Positions 8,282 to 32,462 of a stretch of 64,000 nt of DNA are shown here, piece by piece. Under the pieces are notes generated by a model. The model had not been told where the DNA came from. It ran no database searches and saw only the letters and a program-made list of their open reading frames with translations. Made by a program: the position numbers and the translations under genes. The DNA is taken from positions 1-64,000 of IMG/VR virus record IMGVR_UViG_3300024999_000030; one strand, written 5' to 3'. The number at the start of each line of letters is the position of its first letter. Within the stretch, counting starts at the first letter, position 1.

Positions 8282-8507
8282 CATGAGTCGTCGAGGCTTA
8301 AGAAATTGGGTATGGTTTAGCCGATATCGAACCGCAGTATTGGCCCCATGTTATATTTGTGGTTGGTTGCTCTCTTTTGATGAAGCCACATTGGATCATG
8401 TTGTGCCTAAATCCCTTGGGGGAAAAAACGAATTAAATAATTTAGAAATTTGTTGTGCGAAATGTAATCATAAAAAAGCTGACAGGCTTTTAAAAAATAA
8501 CGGTTGA
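8271..8507 (+). CDS. Small HNH endonuclease
   Basis: CYICG...TLDHVVPKSLGGKNELNNLEICCAKCNHKK. Confidence 0.8.
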   Translation: MLINMSRRGLRNWVWFSRYRTAVLAPCYICGWLLSFDEATLDHVVPKSLGGKNELNNLEICCAKCNHKKADRLLKNNG

Positions 8508-13015: not shown

Positions 13016-13484
13016 GATAGGATTATTTAAAACAGCCATATATCCATTGCCCGTTATTATATCTGATAGTAAATCATCTATAGATGGGCTTTGGGCGAAG
13101 ATTAAAAATACACCAGATTACAAACGTTTAATCCAGCATCCAAATAAATATAAGTTTAATCAATTAGATATGTTGGTTAATAGAACTTTATTCTTTGCTG
13201 TGATATTAGCTGATAGTTTAATCTTATTGAGACGGGACTATGTTGAATGGAAGGCGGCTGGTAGTAAGGACCTAGACAAACAACGCCTCATGGAAATAGA
13301 TTTAAATAAGTTGAATAGCCTTTCTAAGGCTGGGGGATTATTTGGAGTTGGTATGGAAAAGCCAGAAATTTCAGATATAGCTTCAGAAGTTGCTAGTCGA
13401 ATCTCGTATTGGAAAGACTATAGATATATTCATGAATTACTATCTCAATTTTATAGAGATACTTTTGGAGGAACTATGTCTTAG
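13008..13484 (+). CDS. Hypothetical protein
   Basis: 158 aa ORF, TAG stop. Confidence 0.65.
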   Translation: MSKIGLFKTAIYPLPVIISDSKSSIDGLWAKIKNTPDYKRLIQHPNKYKFNQLDMLVNRTLFFAVILADSLILLRRDYVEWKAAGSKDLDKQRLMEIDLNKLNSLSKAGGLFGVGMEKPEISDIASEVASRISYWKDYRYIHELLSQFYRDTFGGTMS

Positions 13485-13565: not shown

Positions 13566-13985
13566 ATGGATACGTTCAAAACTGAATTTAAAAAACTTGC
13601 ACACGAAAAGAAATTAACCCGCTACGACATGGCATTATATTGTTTGTCAAAGGCGATTCTGAAAGATAATAGTTACGAAAGAGCGAGTATCTTTCTTAAT
13701 AAAAGTTTCACCCCTGTTACTAAATCCATAAAATTAAAAAATGGAGCACGTCCCTGGTTTTCATTGTGGGACGCTCTTCATTCTCTAGATAAGGCCCTCT
13801 TAACTATAAGAAAGCAATCAGAATTATTTAATTATAATTTCTCTGGTCCTTGGGCTGAAAACATCAAATTGTTAACTAGTACAATGACAGAAGATGATTT
13901 AGTTAAGATATCATCTTTATTAATTCAGTTTAAATCTACTTATGGTGAGATTAGATTCTATGAGAAAGTTGAGGTGGTATCATGA
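13566..13985 (+). CDS. Hypothetical protein
   Basis: GGAGG RBS before ATG 13566. Confidence 0.65.
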   Translation: MDTFKTEFKKLAHEKKLTRYDMALYCLSKAILKDNSYERASIFLNKSFTPVTKSIKLKNGARPWFSLWDALHSLDKALLTIRKQSELFNYNFSGPWAENIKLLTSTMTEDDLVKISSLLIQFKSTYGEIRFYEKVEVVS

Positions 13986-14189
13986 GCCTCAAATCTCTCA
14001 GAGAGGTACAGAGACTTATAGAATTGGTCATAGCACATGTCTGGTAAATCTGAAGATGAACAAGATGTCATCAGAGATAATATGGGTTTTCTCTTTCGTG
14101 ATATGACAGATGAAGAGAATAAGATTGTAGAAGAGCTATCAGCTAATCTGTATAGGCTGGAAGATGTGTTGGGAGGAAGTCATGAGTGA
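13982..14189 (+). pseudogene. Small gene, possibly frameshifted (13982 frame into 14037-14189 frame)
   Basis: RBS-led ATG 13982 stops after 21 codons; protein-like frame MSGKSEDEQDVIRDNM... runs to TGA 14189. Confidence 0.35.
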
Positions 14190-14514
14190 TACTCCTTATA
14201 CTTACATCATAGTCCGTAAAGACATCTCTCCAGAGCAACAGACAGTACAAGCTTGTCATGCTGCATTGGAGGTTGGGTTTAGATTTGAGAAACCAGAAAA
14301 AACATCTTTCTTGATTTTATTGGAGGTGGTTAATCAAGCAGAATTGTTAGCCGCTTCTTAGGAACTTGACAAAAGATGCATTGCTAGTTATATTTTCTTT
14401 GAGCCGGATAATAATATGGGGTATTCGGCTCTATGTACTAAACCTATTTATGAAAGGAAGGAAAGAAATGTCTTTAACAGATGGAAGCTCTTCACGGGAT
14501 CTAGTAAATTATGA
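14182..14514 (+). CDS. Peptidyl-tRNA hydrolase type 2 (Pth2)-like protein with in-frame TAG at 14359-14361
   Basis: YIIVRKD...Q.CHA N-half; after TAG the same frame gives ELDKRCIASYIFFEPDNNMGYSALCTKP..., completing a ~110 aa Pth2-like domain. Confidence 0.7.
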
Positions 14515-14689
14515 GATTGTGCTGCGTGGTCCCAATGGAATGTTTCAAGTGGCCGAGCAAGATAGTGCTGTGGTTTTAGTTAATGAAGAAGGTAAGGTTA
14601 TTGAGAGCAGATTGTATGACGATAGAGACTTTAGAATTATTCAAATGTTCAAAGCTGGTTTACGTCATACTGGGATCGGAAGTTTCTAA
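14468..14689 (+). CDS. Hypothetical protein
   Basis: AAGGA RBS before ATG 14468. Confidence 0.5.
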   Translation: MSLTDGSSSRDLVNYEIVLRGPNGMFQVAEQDSAVVLVNEEGKVIESRLYDDRDFRIIQMFKAGLRHTGIGSF

Positions 14690-14707
14690 ATTAAGTTATT
14701 TTTAAGG

Positions 14708-14783
14708 GTCCAGTTAGCTCAATTGGCTAGAGCAGTATTCTCTAAAAACACTGACATCCGTTCGATCCGGATACTGGACACCA
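14708..14783 (+). tRNA. Amber suppressor tRNA (CTA)
   Basis: 76 nt cloverleaf GTCCAGT/ACTGGAC; loop CT-CTA-AA; one A.C mismatch in anticodon stem; TTCGATC T-loop; CCA. Confidence 0.85.
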
Positions 14784-14797
14784 AAAGGAAATAAATT

Positions 14798-15046
14798 ATG
14801 CCATACATACCAGAATCAGATAGAGACAGATTACGTCCTCATTGTGGACCGGAAAACGTTGGTGAATTGAATTATGTTATTACATCAATTATTGATAATT
14901 ATATCGGTCCATCTATGAGATATTCAGATATTAATGCAGTAATAGGTGCTCTGGAGTGTGCTAAACTTGAATTATATCGACGTTTAGCGGCTCCATATGA
15001 AGACGAAAAAAAGGAAATAAACGGAGACGTTTATCAAAATAGATAG
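14798..15046 (+). CDS. Conserved small phage protein (DUF6899-like)
   Basis: MPYI...GELNYVIT...Y..INAVIGALECAKLELYRR..APYED.K...NGDV. Confidence 0.65.
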   Translation: MPYIPESDRDRLRPHCGPENVGELNYVITSIIDNYIGPSMRYSDINAVIGALECAKLELYRRLAAPYEDEKKEINGDVYQNR

Positions 15047-15051
15047 GAGAT

Positions 15052-15501
15052 ATGGAAATGCAGAAAAAGAAAGTTCATCGAATCCTTGCTCCCCGCCCTA
15101 AAGTTTATTTGGCGGGACCTATTAAGGATTGTACTGATGCAGAGGCAGGTGATTGGCGTAAAGAAGCTACGGAAAAACTAGCTGAAATTGGATATGACGT
15201 ATTAGATCCATTCAAGCGAGACTATCGTGGTGTCGAAGATAATCATTGGCAAGAGATTGTCGAGGGTGATAAACACGACATTGAAGCGGCAGATTATATA
15301 ATTGCTAATTGCCCAAAAGCCAGTGCAGGGACTAGTATGGAAATTTATCTATCTTGGGAAATGGGAAAGGCTCCAATTGTTATTGCTCCTAAACCTGTAA
15401 GCCCATGGGTTAGATATCATGCTGCGGACGTGGTTGATAGTTTAGATGAAGCTATTATGATGTTGAAAATTTTTGGGTCTCGAAAAATAGCAAACAAATA
15501 A
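15052..15501 (+). CDS. Nucleoside 2-deoxyribosyltransferase-like protein
   Basis: VYLAGPI...DWR...LDP...D..DI..AD.IIA.....SAGTSME. Confidence 0.8.
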   Translation: MEMQKKKVHRILAPRPKVYLAGPIKDCTDAEAGDWRKEATEKLAEIGYDVLDPFKRDYRGVEDNHWQEIVEGDKHDIEAADYIIANCPKASAGTSMEIYLSWEMGKAPIVIAPKPVSPWVRYHAADVVDSLDEAIMMLKIFGSRKIANK

Positions 15502-16538: not shown

Positions 16539-16620
16539 TCAGGAGAGCGCATATGGGTTGCGACCTGGCTGTTAACCAGATGCGAAAGCACACAGAGTTC
16601 GATTCTCTGCTCCTGAGCCA
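16539..16620 (+). tRNA. tRNA-Asn(GTT) with extended variable arm
   Basis: Loop CT-GTT-AA; V-region TGC-GAAA-GCA hairpin. Confidence 0.85.
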
Positions 16621-16791: not shown

Positions 16792-16885
16792 TGCGGGGTA
16801 GACTAGCGGTTCAGTCACTTGGTTCATACCCAAGCCGCACGGTAGCCAATCCGTCAGGTGGGTTCGACTCCCATCCCCGCCACCA
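16792..16885 (+). tRNA. tRNA-Met(CAT), initiator-like, with ~23 nt variable arm
   Basis: 1.72 mismatch (T.C), A11-U24 pair, loop TT-CAT-AC, ACGG/CCGT hairpin in V-region. Confidence 0.78.
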
Positions 16886-30280: not shown

Positions 30281-30374
30281 GCGGGAGTCGTCCAGCGGCC
30301 AGGACAGCGGTCTTATAAGCCGCCTCGCTCCAGATTAGAGCAAAACGGGGGTTCGAGTCCCTCCTCCCGCACCA
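30281..30374 (+). tRNA. tRNA-Ile(TAT) with ~23 nt variable arm
   Basis: GCGGT-CTTATAA-GCCGC; GCTC/GAGC hairpin in V-region; CCA. Confidence 0.82.
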
Positions 30375-30948: not shown

Positions 30949-31038
30949 GGGTCCGTCACCTAGTGGCCGAGGGTTCCAGCCTTTTAAGCTGGCGAGGTTT
31001 TACCTCCACCGTTGGTTCAAATCCAACCGGTCCCACCA
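30949..31038 (+). tRNA. tRNA-Lys(TTT) with long variable arm
   Basis: CCAGC-CTTTTAA-GCTGG; GAGG/CCTC V-arm. Confidence 0.85.
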
Positions 31039-32102: not shown

Positions 32103-32188
32103 TGAGGAGTGGCCCAATTGGCAGGGCACGGGGCTTTGGACCCCGCGTGGTCTCCACATTGAAGGTTCGAGTCCTTCCTCCTCAGCCA
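32103..32188 (+). tRNA. tRNA-Gln(TTG) with long variable arm
   Basis: U1-A72, CGGGG-CTTTGGA-CCCCG, GTGG/CCAC V-arm. Confidence 0.85.
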
Positions 32189-32194
32189 AAATAT

Positions 32195-32280
32195 GCAGGA
32201 GTCCCCTAGTGCTCGATGGGACCGCACTTGTAATGCGGCGGCGAAAGCCCACGTGGGTTGAAATCCCACCTCCTGCTCCA
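32195..32280 (+). tRNA. tRNA-Thr(TGT) with extended variable arm
   Basis: CCGCA-CTTGTAA-TGCGG; GGC-GAAA-GCC. Confidence 0.85.
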
Positions 32281-32374: not shown

Positions 32375-32462
32375 TGGGGAGTCGCGTAGCGGCCTAGCGC
32401 ATCGGTCTCTGGAACCGACAGAGGAAACTCTAACGAAGGTTCGAATCCTTCCTCCCCTGCCA
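32375..32462 (+). tRNA. tRNA-Gln(CTG) with long variable arm
   Basis: TCGGT-CTCTGGA-ACCGA; AGAG-GAAA-CTCT. Confidence 0.85.

Follow-up and report, generated by a model that had tools for sequence, protein, structure and literature searches.

We describe a short locus of a phage recovered from groundwater metagenomes (IMG/VR record IMGVR_UViG_3300024999_000030), in which a gene for a protein with the fold of peptidyl-tRNA hydrolase 2 (Pth2) is interrupted by an in-frame amber codon and is followed by a gene for an amber-suppressor tRNA with the anticodon CUA (tRNA-CUA). The record is 332,730 bp long and is rated complete by CheckV; the window analyzed here is its first 64 kb (64,000 nucleotides). 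Nearly all genes of the genome lie on the plus strand, as do the features of this locus. The Pth2-like gene has 110 codons (14182..14514), from an ATG at 14182 to a TGA at 14512-14514, and is preceded by a strong Shine-Dalgarno sequence, GGGAGGAAG, at 14171..14179, which was read from the sequence. Codon 60 (14359..14361) is a TAG in a TAG-G context and falls in the second helix of the structural model, at a variable alignment column. After the TAG, the first in-frame start is a Met 19 codons on, which lacks a ribosome-binding site (RBS), and this half carries an E-P-D motif that is invariant in the family. With no usable start after the TAG and E-P-D in that half, both halves are required, in agreement with a preliminary description of the locus that had read the frame as split by an amber codon.

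Upstream of the Pth2-like gene lies its conserved neighbor, which we call partner gene A (13566..13985, 139 residues, all-helical). Between the two is a 50-residue open reading frame (ORF; 14037..14189), whose stop overlaps the start of the Pth2-like gene; it has no family match, and relatives lack it and have gene A immediately next to the Pth2-like gene. Downstream, a 73-residue ORF with an RBS (14468..14689) shares 47 nt with the 3' end of the Pth2-like gene; it also has no family match and is dissimilar to the ORF at the equivalent position in a relative, L073. The tRNA-CUA gene follows at 14708..14783.

The preliminary description had placed a promoter 5 nt past the TAG, and the sequence TTGACA-N17-TATATT is indeed located there (14366..14394), inside the Pth2-like ORF and directed at the 73-residue ORF and tRNA-CUA. 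The genome has 10 exact copies of this motif, compared with ~0.12 per strand in shuffled sequences, while promoter matches of at least 11/12 in general are no commoner than chance. The copies start at 8504, 14366, and 17340 in the window, at 143533, 145197, 153600, and 262767 elsewhere in the genome, and at 162417, 163587, and 168418 on the minus strand. Without exception they are on the coding strand, even within the minus-strand block, and they precede genes or tRNAs. Because the exact variant is enriched and is found upstream of genes on the coding strand, the element at 14366-14394 is probably a real promoter that drives the 73-residue ORF and the tRNA, and the motif probably represents the sigma-70-type (early?) promoter family of this phage. 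The internal promoter is confined to this phage and is not conserved in relatives.

Conservation of the amber codon

The stretch that contains the TAG is identical in an independent IMG/VR contig and in contigs assembled from the runs of two studies of different years. These identical independent assemblies indicate that the TAG is real and not an assembly error. To place it in a wider context, we used a family sample of 122 loci from IMG/VR, JGI metagenomes, Logan, and GenBank phages, which form 86 clusters at 90% identity; the metagenome scan was run with alignment A1, alignment A4 being too diverse. Alignment columns are numbered below from an invariant Arg (R).

The TAG is not unique to this genome. 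Five relatives (L103, L104, L110, L111, and L113) have it at the same column, R+48, and their proteins are 63-67% identical to that of the window; the sequences of L104 and L111 occur again on other contigs, L112 and L114. In comparisons among the window, L103, and L104, the proportion of synonymous differences (pS) is 0.74-0.99, i.e., saturated. The proportion of nonsynonymous differences (pN) in the part after the TAG is 0.23-0.32 among the same three, comparable to that in relatives without a TAG, with a pN/pS of ~0.3. Low pN after the TAG despite saturated pS implies that the codons beyond the TAG are translated and that the TAG was retained through long divergence; by this comparison, the post-TAG part is under purifying selection. 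The nearest TAG-free relatives, L105 and L073, have AAA at this column, and CAG is found in none. Each of the five relatives has a tRNA-CUA shortly behind the gene: in L110, L111, L112, and L113 it starts 330-372 nt from the gene start, i.e., directly behind the gene, and the gene order in L073 is that of the window (gene, small ORF, tRNA). An alignment of homologs had been proposed as a check on the site, and it returned TAG in five relatives or AAA, with a linked tRNA-CUA.

Amber codons across the family

In-frame TAG codons are present in at least 27 of the 86 clusters. The interrupting stops are all TAG, except for a single TGA (L155); TAA was not found among the 86 clusters. TAGs inside the domain occupy five columns: R+24 (L159), R+28 (L008), R+38 (L119/L125), R+48 (the clade of the window), and R+78 (L010). 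Four of the five map to loops of the model. Across the family as a whole, TAGs occupy at least six positions. The commonest form, in at least 18 clusters, is a leader that consists of an RBS, a start codon, 1-6 codons, and the TAG, after which the domain follows without an in-frame start. Leader-type TAGs are found in Acinetobacter phage ME3, Ralstonia phage RsoM2USA, the 595-kb uncultured LR756511, many metagenome contigs, and the Rak2-like phages GAP32, CBB, XbC2, Serratia BF, Yersinia fHe-Yen9-04, and Erwinia pEa_SNUABM_19. The leader codons vary by genus (M-A-Q, M-T-H, M-S-H, M-T, M-L, M-K), and the TAG is constant. In GAP32 and BF, there is no ATG, GTG, or TTG anywhere near the domain start. 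A maximum-likelihood tree requires at least 5-8 gains or losses of TAG. In every TAG examined, the next base is A or G, and a purine directly after TAG is a context that favors amber suppression in Escherichia coli.

In GenBank records, the gene is either missing or annotated as a shortened ORF with an internal start (KY630187, LT960551, MW879342, JN882285, KU574722, and MG752970). The family is large, with 3,560 clusters at 50% identity that reach an E value of <=1e-3. In L010, the Pth2-like gene is interrupted twice, by a leader TAG as well as by that at R+78. The contig of L010, G002, is an 84-kb huge-phage fragment with 43 tRNA genes, among them two distinct tRNAs with the anticodon TCA (opal suppressors) at ~54.5-57 kb.

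The suppressor tRNA and its linkage to the gene

Both ARAGORN and Rfam (RF00005; 55.5 bits, E value of 1e-9) recognize the complete tRNA that had been proposed at 14708. It is 76 nt long, with A73 and an encoded CCA, and in the ARAGORN drawing the acceptor stem is 7 bp long, the T-loop canonical, and the D-loop ordinary; ARAGORN calls every CTA anticodon "Pyl." The anticodon loop, C-U-CUA-A-A, has U33 and a purine at position 37 within a canonical cloverleaf. Among 17 cassette-linked tRNA-CUA genes, which are only ~60-70% alike in alignment, 18 of 20 stem pairs have compensatory changes and the loop sequence U-CUA-A is invariant. The cassette-linked tRNA-CUA genes thus covary in the manner of functional tRNAs and are probably long-standing suppressors. 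Compared with 174 phage tRNAs, the tRNA-CUA of the window gives its best alignment scores with other tRNA-CUA genes and a tRNA-Arg(TCT); a blastn search against cultured phages gave no match. We predict that the tRNA-CUA is charged and decodes the UAG at codon 60.

In most lineages, the gene and a tRNA-CUA are physically linked. Among the 41 clusters of the family sample with 2.5 kb or more of flanking sequence on each side, 24 have tRNA-CUA inside the locus (within 3-4 kb), frequently without any other tRNA. All of the complete or whole-record genomes checked in which the gene has a TAG encode tRNA-CUA. The distance varies: ~0.2 kb downstream of the Pth2-like gene in this phage, 0.45 kb upstream in ME3, 3-4 kb downstream in GAP32, CBB, BF, Yen9-04, and pEa_19, 8 kb away in LR756511, 13 kb in RsoM2USA, and ~40 kb in the genome of L014 (G006). 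RaK2, on the other side, has a copy of the gene without a TAG and eight identifiable tRNAs, none of which is CUA; its copy is the most divergent of the family and has lost E-P-D. The authors of the XacN1 study searched for targets of its two CUA tRNAs and found none (PMC5852040). The XacN1 copy of the Pth2-like gene is a fused form without a TAG, so the empty search fits.

Fold and relationships of the protein

The Pfam PTH2 match of the window protein spans the TAG (17.1 bits, E value of 0.007, against a gathering cutoff of 23 bits). Sixteen of 33 family members match PF01981 at an E value of <=0.05 (best, 3e-6), and one of the closest database homologs, P0002, scores 23.9 bits. When the family profile was compared with the PDB, the best match was a Pth2 (E value of 2.8e-4). 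An AlphaFold2 (AF2) model of the closest homolog has a predicted local distance difference test (pLDDT) score of 95.6. Its 15 best PDB matches are Pth2 proteins without exception (template modeling [TM] scores of 0.74-0.83, probability of 1.0, Foldseek E value of ~1e-6). The Pth2 proteins matched are TA0108, PH1539, AF2095, MJ0051, Sulfolobus solfataricus Pth2, and human Bit1. On this model, the family has the Pth2 fold.

The catalytic residues are a different matter. In S. solfataricus Pth2, the catalytic Lys lies in a G-K motif and the catalytic Asp in V-x-D-A-G. The invariant residues of the phage family are R, D, Q, H, and E-P. In hidden Markov model alignments to 24bt_A and 1rlk_A, which are remote and of uncertain register, the G-K position is a gap or Gln/Glu, and the Asp position is the invariant Glu of E-P-D. 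The phage proteins thus share with Pth2 (PF01981; PDB 1xty, 3erj, 1wn2, 2zv3, and 1q7s) the fold, the N-terminal R-x-D...Q..H-A motif, and an acidic residue where archaeal and eukaryotic Pth2 has the catalytic Asp. They differ in lacking the Lys of G-K, in having E-P-D in place of D-A-G, and in being phage-borne and paired with a helical partner or an HD-like protein. Full membership of Pth2 and identity as a peptidyl-tRNA hydrolase are not established; from the modeled fold, the product may hydrolyze ester-linked (peptidyl- or aminoacyl-) tRNA.

Searches of this genome found neither RF-1 nor a canonical PTH2. The closest relative with a long context, L073, has a canonical PTH2 gene a few kilobases from the cassette, and an hhalign comparison of the family profile with this single sequence gave a weak match over 21 columns. 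L073 also has a release-factor-like gene in pieces, a 35-residue PCRF fragment and a 129-residue GGQ domain (the release-factor-like and PTH2 observations are at L073:1982-2650 and L073:9058-9453).

Partner genes

In most lineages, gene A is the immediate upstream neighbor of the Pth2-like gene. Homologs occupy this place in L004, L005, L006, L012, L073, and L103-L105, and in L018 and L024 gene A forms the N-terminal part of a fusion with the Pth2-like domain. A family that we call F6 takes the role of gene A in L020-L035. The AF2 model of gene A (pLDDT of 88) has seven helices. Gene A gave no Pfam or PHROG match, no usable ESM Atlas match, and no PDB fold match with an E value of <0.5, and it has no detectable relatives outside the cassette context. 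A complex prediction for gene A and the Pth2-like protein, made with the natural pair of L104 and their own alignments, scored 0.00, a result that counts neither way.

An HD-like gene comes after the Pth2-like gene in ME3 and in the Rak2-like phages. In the Rak2-like phages, this gene itself has an in-frame TAG at codon 47 (GGA-TAG-GGC) and is annotated as two ORFs (L078:3318-3884, L079:3321-3887, L081:4321-4887, and L082:4324-4890). The ME3 homolog (ME3_194) is uninterrupted, and no homolog of it was found in the 333-kb genome studied here. Antisense and near-identical matches dominated a homology-supported scan for in-frame stops across the loci, and plus-strand matches alone were used. In XacN1, Xoo-sp13, and CM1, an N-terminal segment fused to the Pth2-like domain has the C-terminal motif of the HD-like protein. 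In five loci, a transfer-messenger RNA (tmRNA) gene lies 0.8-3.4 kb upstream of the Pth2-like gene (L004:1585-1954, L020:2737-3076, L021:3107-3446, L032:628-1079, and L036:2019-2343).

Genetic code of the phage

The genome uses the standard code. ORFs of at least 100 residues under table 11 cover 86% of it, open ORFs reach 4,000 residues, and ORFs of 1,085-2,526 residues are uninterrupted. A crude genome-wide call of 281 genes has 187 TAA, 71 TGA, and 23 TAG stops. When genes that end in TAG were extended by read-through, the result across the genome was a short tail or entry into the next gene. Candidate in-frame TAGs in poorly called regions resemble true C termini, and some belong to paralogs with a shared terminal motif; neighboring genes in the same frame obscured the result of a simple scan for in-frame stops by codon bias. 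Across the 333-kb genome, no convincing in-frame TAG was found outside the Pth2-like gene. The gene next to the tRNA-CUA, a DUF6899 gene (14798..15046; PF21840, E value of 4e-25), ends in TAG, so TAG also acts as a terminator in this phage. The preliminary description had pointed to TAG-ended genes at 13484, 15046, and 57235 as a sign that the genome is not globally recoded; these three stops are confirmed, and at least 23 genes end in TAG overall.

Beyond the window, a stretch of 18.9 kb with 45% GC (G000:C1:166339-185224, in L039) has short overlapping ORFs, none of which was called as a gene, and carries 3 tRNAs at 179.8-180.5 kb. In or just past it (to ~199 kb) are several small paralogs with a TAG right behind a shared "EFIA.IQIQ"-like motif.

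Discussion

Most firmly, the comparisons presented here indicate that amber suppression, through a dedicated tRNA linked to the gene, would be a condition for synthesis of the Pth2-fold protein and that this arrangement has been selected repeatedly. They likewise mark the TAG as an old, selected feature of the family rather than damage. We consider it likely, if well short of certain, that positions 13566-14783 form a conserved phage cassette of gene A, the Pth2-fold gene, and a dedicated suppressor tRNA, in which amber suppression gates the synthesis of a tRNA-ester hydrolase. In this cassette, ribosomes would stop by default at the UAG of codon 60. The tRNA-CUA, transcribed here from the promoter just past the TAG, would be charged by a host synthetase and would outcompete release factor 1 (RF1) at UAG. 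Full-length enzyme would then be made only under active amber suppression and roughly in proportion to it, and the outcome would be a translational AND-gate or a dose sensor. The preliminary description had proposed a local switch by which full-length peptidyl-tRNA hydrolase is made only when the suppressor is present. The switch is supported, and appears to be general, given the conserved TAG, selection on the codons after it, the recurrence of TAGs, and the linkage to the tRNA; the identification as a peptidyl-tRNA hydrolase is not, because the canonical Lys is missing.

Several observations weigh against this interpretation. The anticodon stem of the tRNA-CUA has one A-C mismatch, and its amino acid identity is not assignable by similarity, A73 and U35 being suited to several synthetases. 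Read-through at the TAG and the residue inserted there are what we infer from the sequence. The catalytic Lys of Pth2 is not conserved, which makes the chemistry uncertain. The whole "YFFTRQD" clade and many other members have a neighboring tRNA-CUA and no TAG, so the TAG is not obligatory for the cassette. The 64-kb fragment that carries L008 (40% complete) has the TAG, and no tRNA of any kind was found on it. Finally, our whole-genome gene calling was crude, with 77% coverage and the 18.9-kb stretch uncalled.

What the enzyme would act on can be suggested with low confidence. The fold points to ester-linked tRNA, and the tmRNA and tRNA neighbors together with the leaders, which resemble mini-ORFs, point to ribosome rescue or tRNA recycling. 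The enzyme might clear or recycle tRNA species that arise from suppression, such as drop-off or non-stop products or the charged suppressor itself. Its dose would then be matched to need, as the read-through that creates aberrant products would also yield the enzyme that handles them, coupling synthesis to its cause. A more specific proposal, possible but doubtful, is a homeostat in which the Pth2-fold enzyme and its helical or HD-like partner hydrolyze the aminoacyl or peptidyl form of the suppressor tRNA, with the enzyme's own UAG as a feedback sensor that sets the level of UAG read-through. If true, the homeostat would be the tRNA-based counterpart of prfB autoregulation, and it would explain suppressor tRNAs without known targets in standard-code giant phages.

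The strongest competing explanation, which we nevertheless regard as unlikely, is that the suppressor is kept for another purpose and that TAGs drift into a dispensable small gene without regulatory meaning. Such neutral tolerance would account for the varying positions of the TAGs, in loops or variable columns, and for their absence from many cassette members. It sits poorly with the concentration of TAGs in the Pth2-like family (plus the HD-like neighbor in Rak2-like phages) and with the finding of no further supported in-frame TAG in the 333-kb genome. Nor would drift be expected to preserve a TAG at the same column through saturated divergence, to keep the ATG-x-TAG leader with other starts lost across genera in which the leader codons change, or to leave a purine always next after the TAG.

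Less probable again is that the TAG is a true terminator and that the product is the 59-residue N-terminal fragment (a dipeptide in leader types), the rest being made by noncanonical reinitiation or never. RF1 would terminate some fraction of ribosomes at the TAG in any case, and some leader-type genes have a GTG ~7 codons past the TAG, which annotators used in ME3 and L074. In the window, however, initiation at the Met after the TAG would delete a helix and a strand, GAP32 and BF offer no start near the domain, and termination would leave the linkage to tRNA-CUA unexplained.

We consider it very improbable that TAG is reassigned genome-wide or in late genes (code 15), as in crAss-like and Lak phages, with the Pth2-like gene one of many recoded genes. 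The genome does contain a suppressor tRNA, and TAG is its rarest stop (23 of 281). Yet in-frame TAG is not widespread, most of the genome is open under table 11, and genes that end in TAG stop at natural C termini, including those of paralogs with a shared end motif, beyond which read-through adds a short extension or the next gene. A recent CAG-to-TAG nonsense mutation that broke the gene, with the suppressor masking the damage or the gene dead, was the alternative named in the preliminary description and is almost certainly wrong: the site varies within the family and Q apparently occupies it in the closest database homologs, but these proteins (P0002 and P0003, i.e., L104 and L103) were called with TAG as Q and have TAG in their DNA, the closest TAG-free relatives carry AAA and not CAG, and the TAG is kept in five diverged relatives, with synonymous sites saturated in the pairs measured and purifying selection on the half behind it.

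The gated cassette that we favor resembles several known systems. In the TAG-recoded crAss-like and Lak phages, as here, genes interrupted by a stop depend on a phage suppressor tRNA, TAG is depleted as a terminator, and the suppressor tRNA has been viewed as a "code-change" switch that acts on late or lytic genes; that study does not mention a hydrolase (bioRxiv 10.1101/2021.08.26.457843). In contrast to those phages, the code here is standard, TAG is a real stop, the target gene is linked to the tRNA, and recoding is limited to one small gene family (and one neighbor in Rak2-like phages). The cassette can also be likened to prfB, which encodes release factor 2 (RF2), in which an early in-frame stop in a translation-factor gene senses the capacity to read or terminate and sets the gene's own synthesis. 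There, the stop is a UGA bypassed by a +1 frameshift and the product sensed is RF2 itself, whereas the stop of the cassette would be read by a tRNA.

The bar minigenes of phage lambda offer a third parallel. These ORFs of 2-3 codons terminate poorly and release peptidyl-tRNA, the substrate of Pth, and the leader-type members of our family likewise begin with RBS-ATG-x-stop. The phage mini-ORF differs in being in frame and continuous with a hydrolase domain and in being paired with a suppressor tRNA, and the TAG of the window is at codon 60 and not in a leader. Finally, synthetic circuits that use amber suppressors for gating or feed-forward control need both the mRNA and the suppressor tRNA and achieve tight, delayed AND-type control (PMC7969014); those circuits are engineered, and the phage cassette is natural and conserved. 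Our literature searches found no description of the arrangement of a Pth2-like gene, a TAG, and a suppressor tRNA.

Standard-code jumbo phages often carry amber-suppressor tRNAs without a known purpose, and the cassette would give phage suppressors a first conserved target. The combination of gene, TAG, and tRNA recurs in dozens of diverged giant phages, and the target is present in cultured phages of Cronobacter, Pectobacterium, Serratia, Yersinia, Erwinia, Acinetobacter, and Ralstonia, where it is experimentally tractable, so the role of phage suppressor tRNAs is now directly testable. Our results also expose a systematic annotation error, in which the gene is missing or truncated in GenBank and the stop is hidden in metagenome protein sets called with TAG as Q. 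The cassette may be a natural case of single-gene stop-codon gating in a genome with the standard code, and it might represent code change at an early stage or in its minimal form.

Additional features of the genome

Beyond the DUF6899 gene lies a nucleoside 2-deoxyribosyltransferase-like gene at 15052-15501 (E value of 2e-10); no association of either gene with the cassette was found in other loci.

Of the 29 tRNA genes of the genome, 26 lie within the window. Many are long (82-94 nt): those for Asn, Met, Ile-TAT, Lys, Gln-TTG, Thr-TGT, and Gln-CTG, with long tRNAs at 16539-16620, 16792-16885, 30281-30374, 30949-31038, 32103-32188, 32195-32280, and 32375-32462. ARAGORN drawings of three of them (Gln-TTG, Thr-TGT, and Gln-CTG) have long base-paired variable arms, and these tRNAs have ~60% GC. 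Long variable arms are normally confined to Leu, Ser, and Tyr tRNAs. The tRNA-CUA contrasts with these long tRNAs in its ordinary length of 76 nt and its GC content of 46%.

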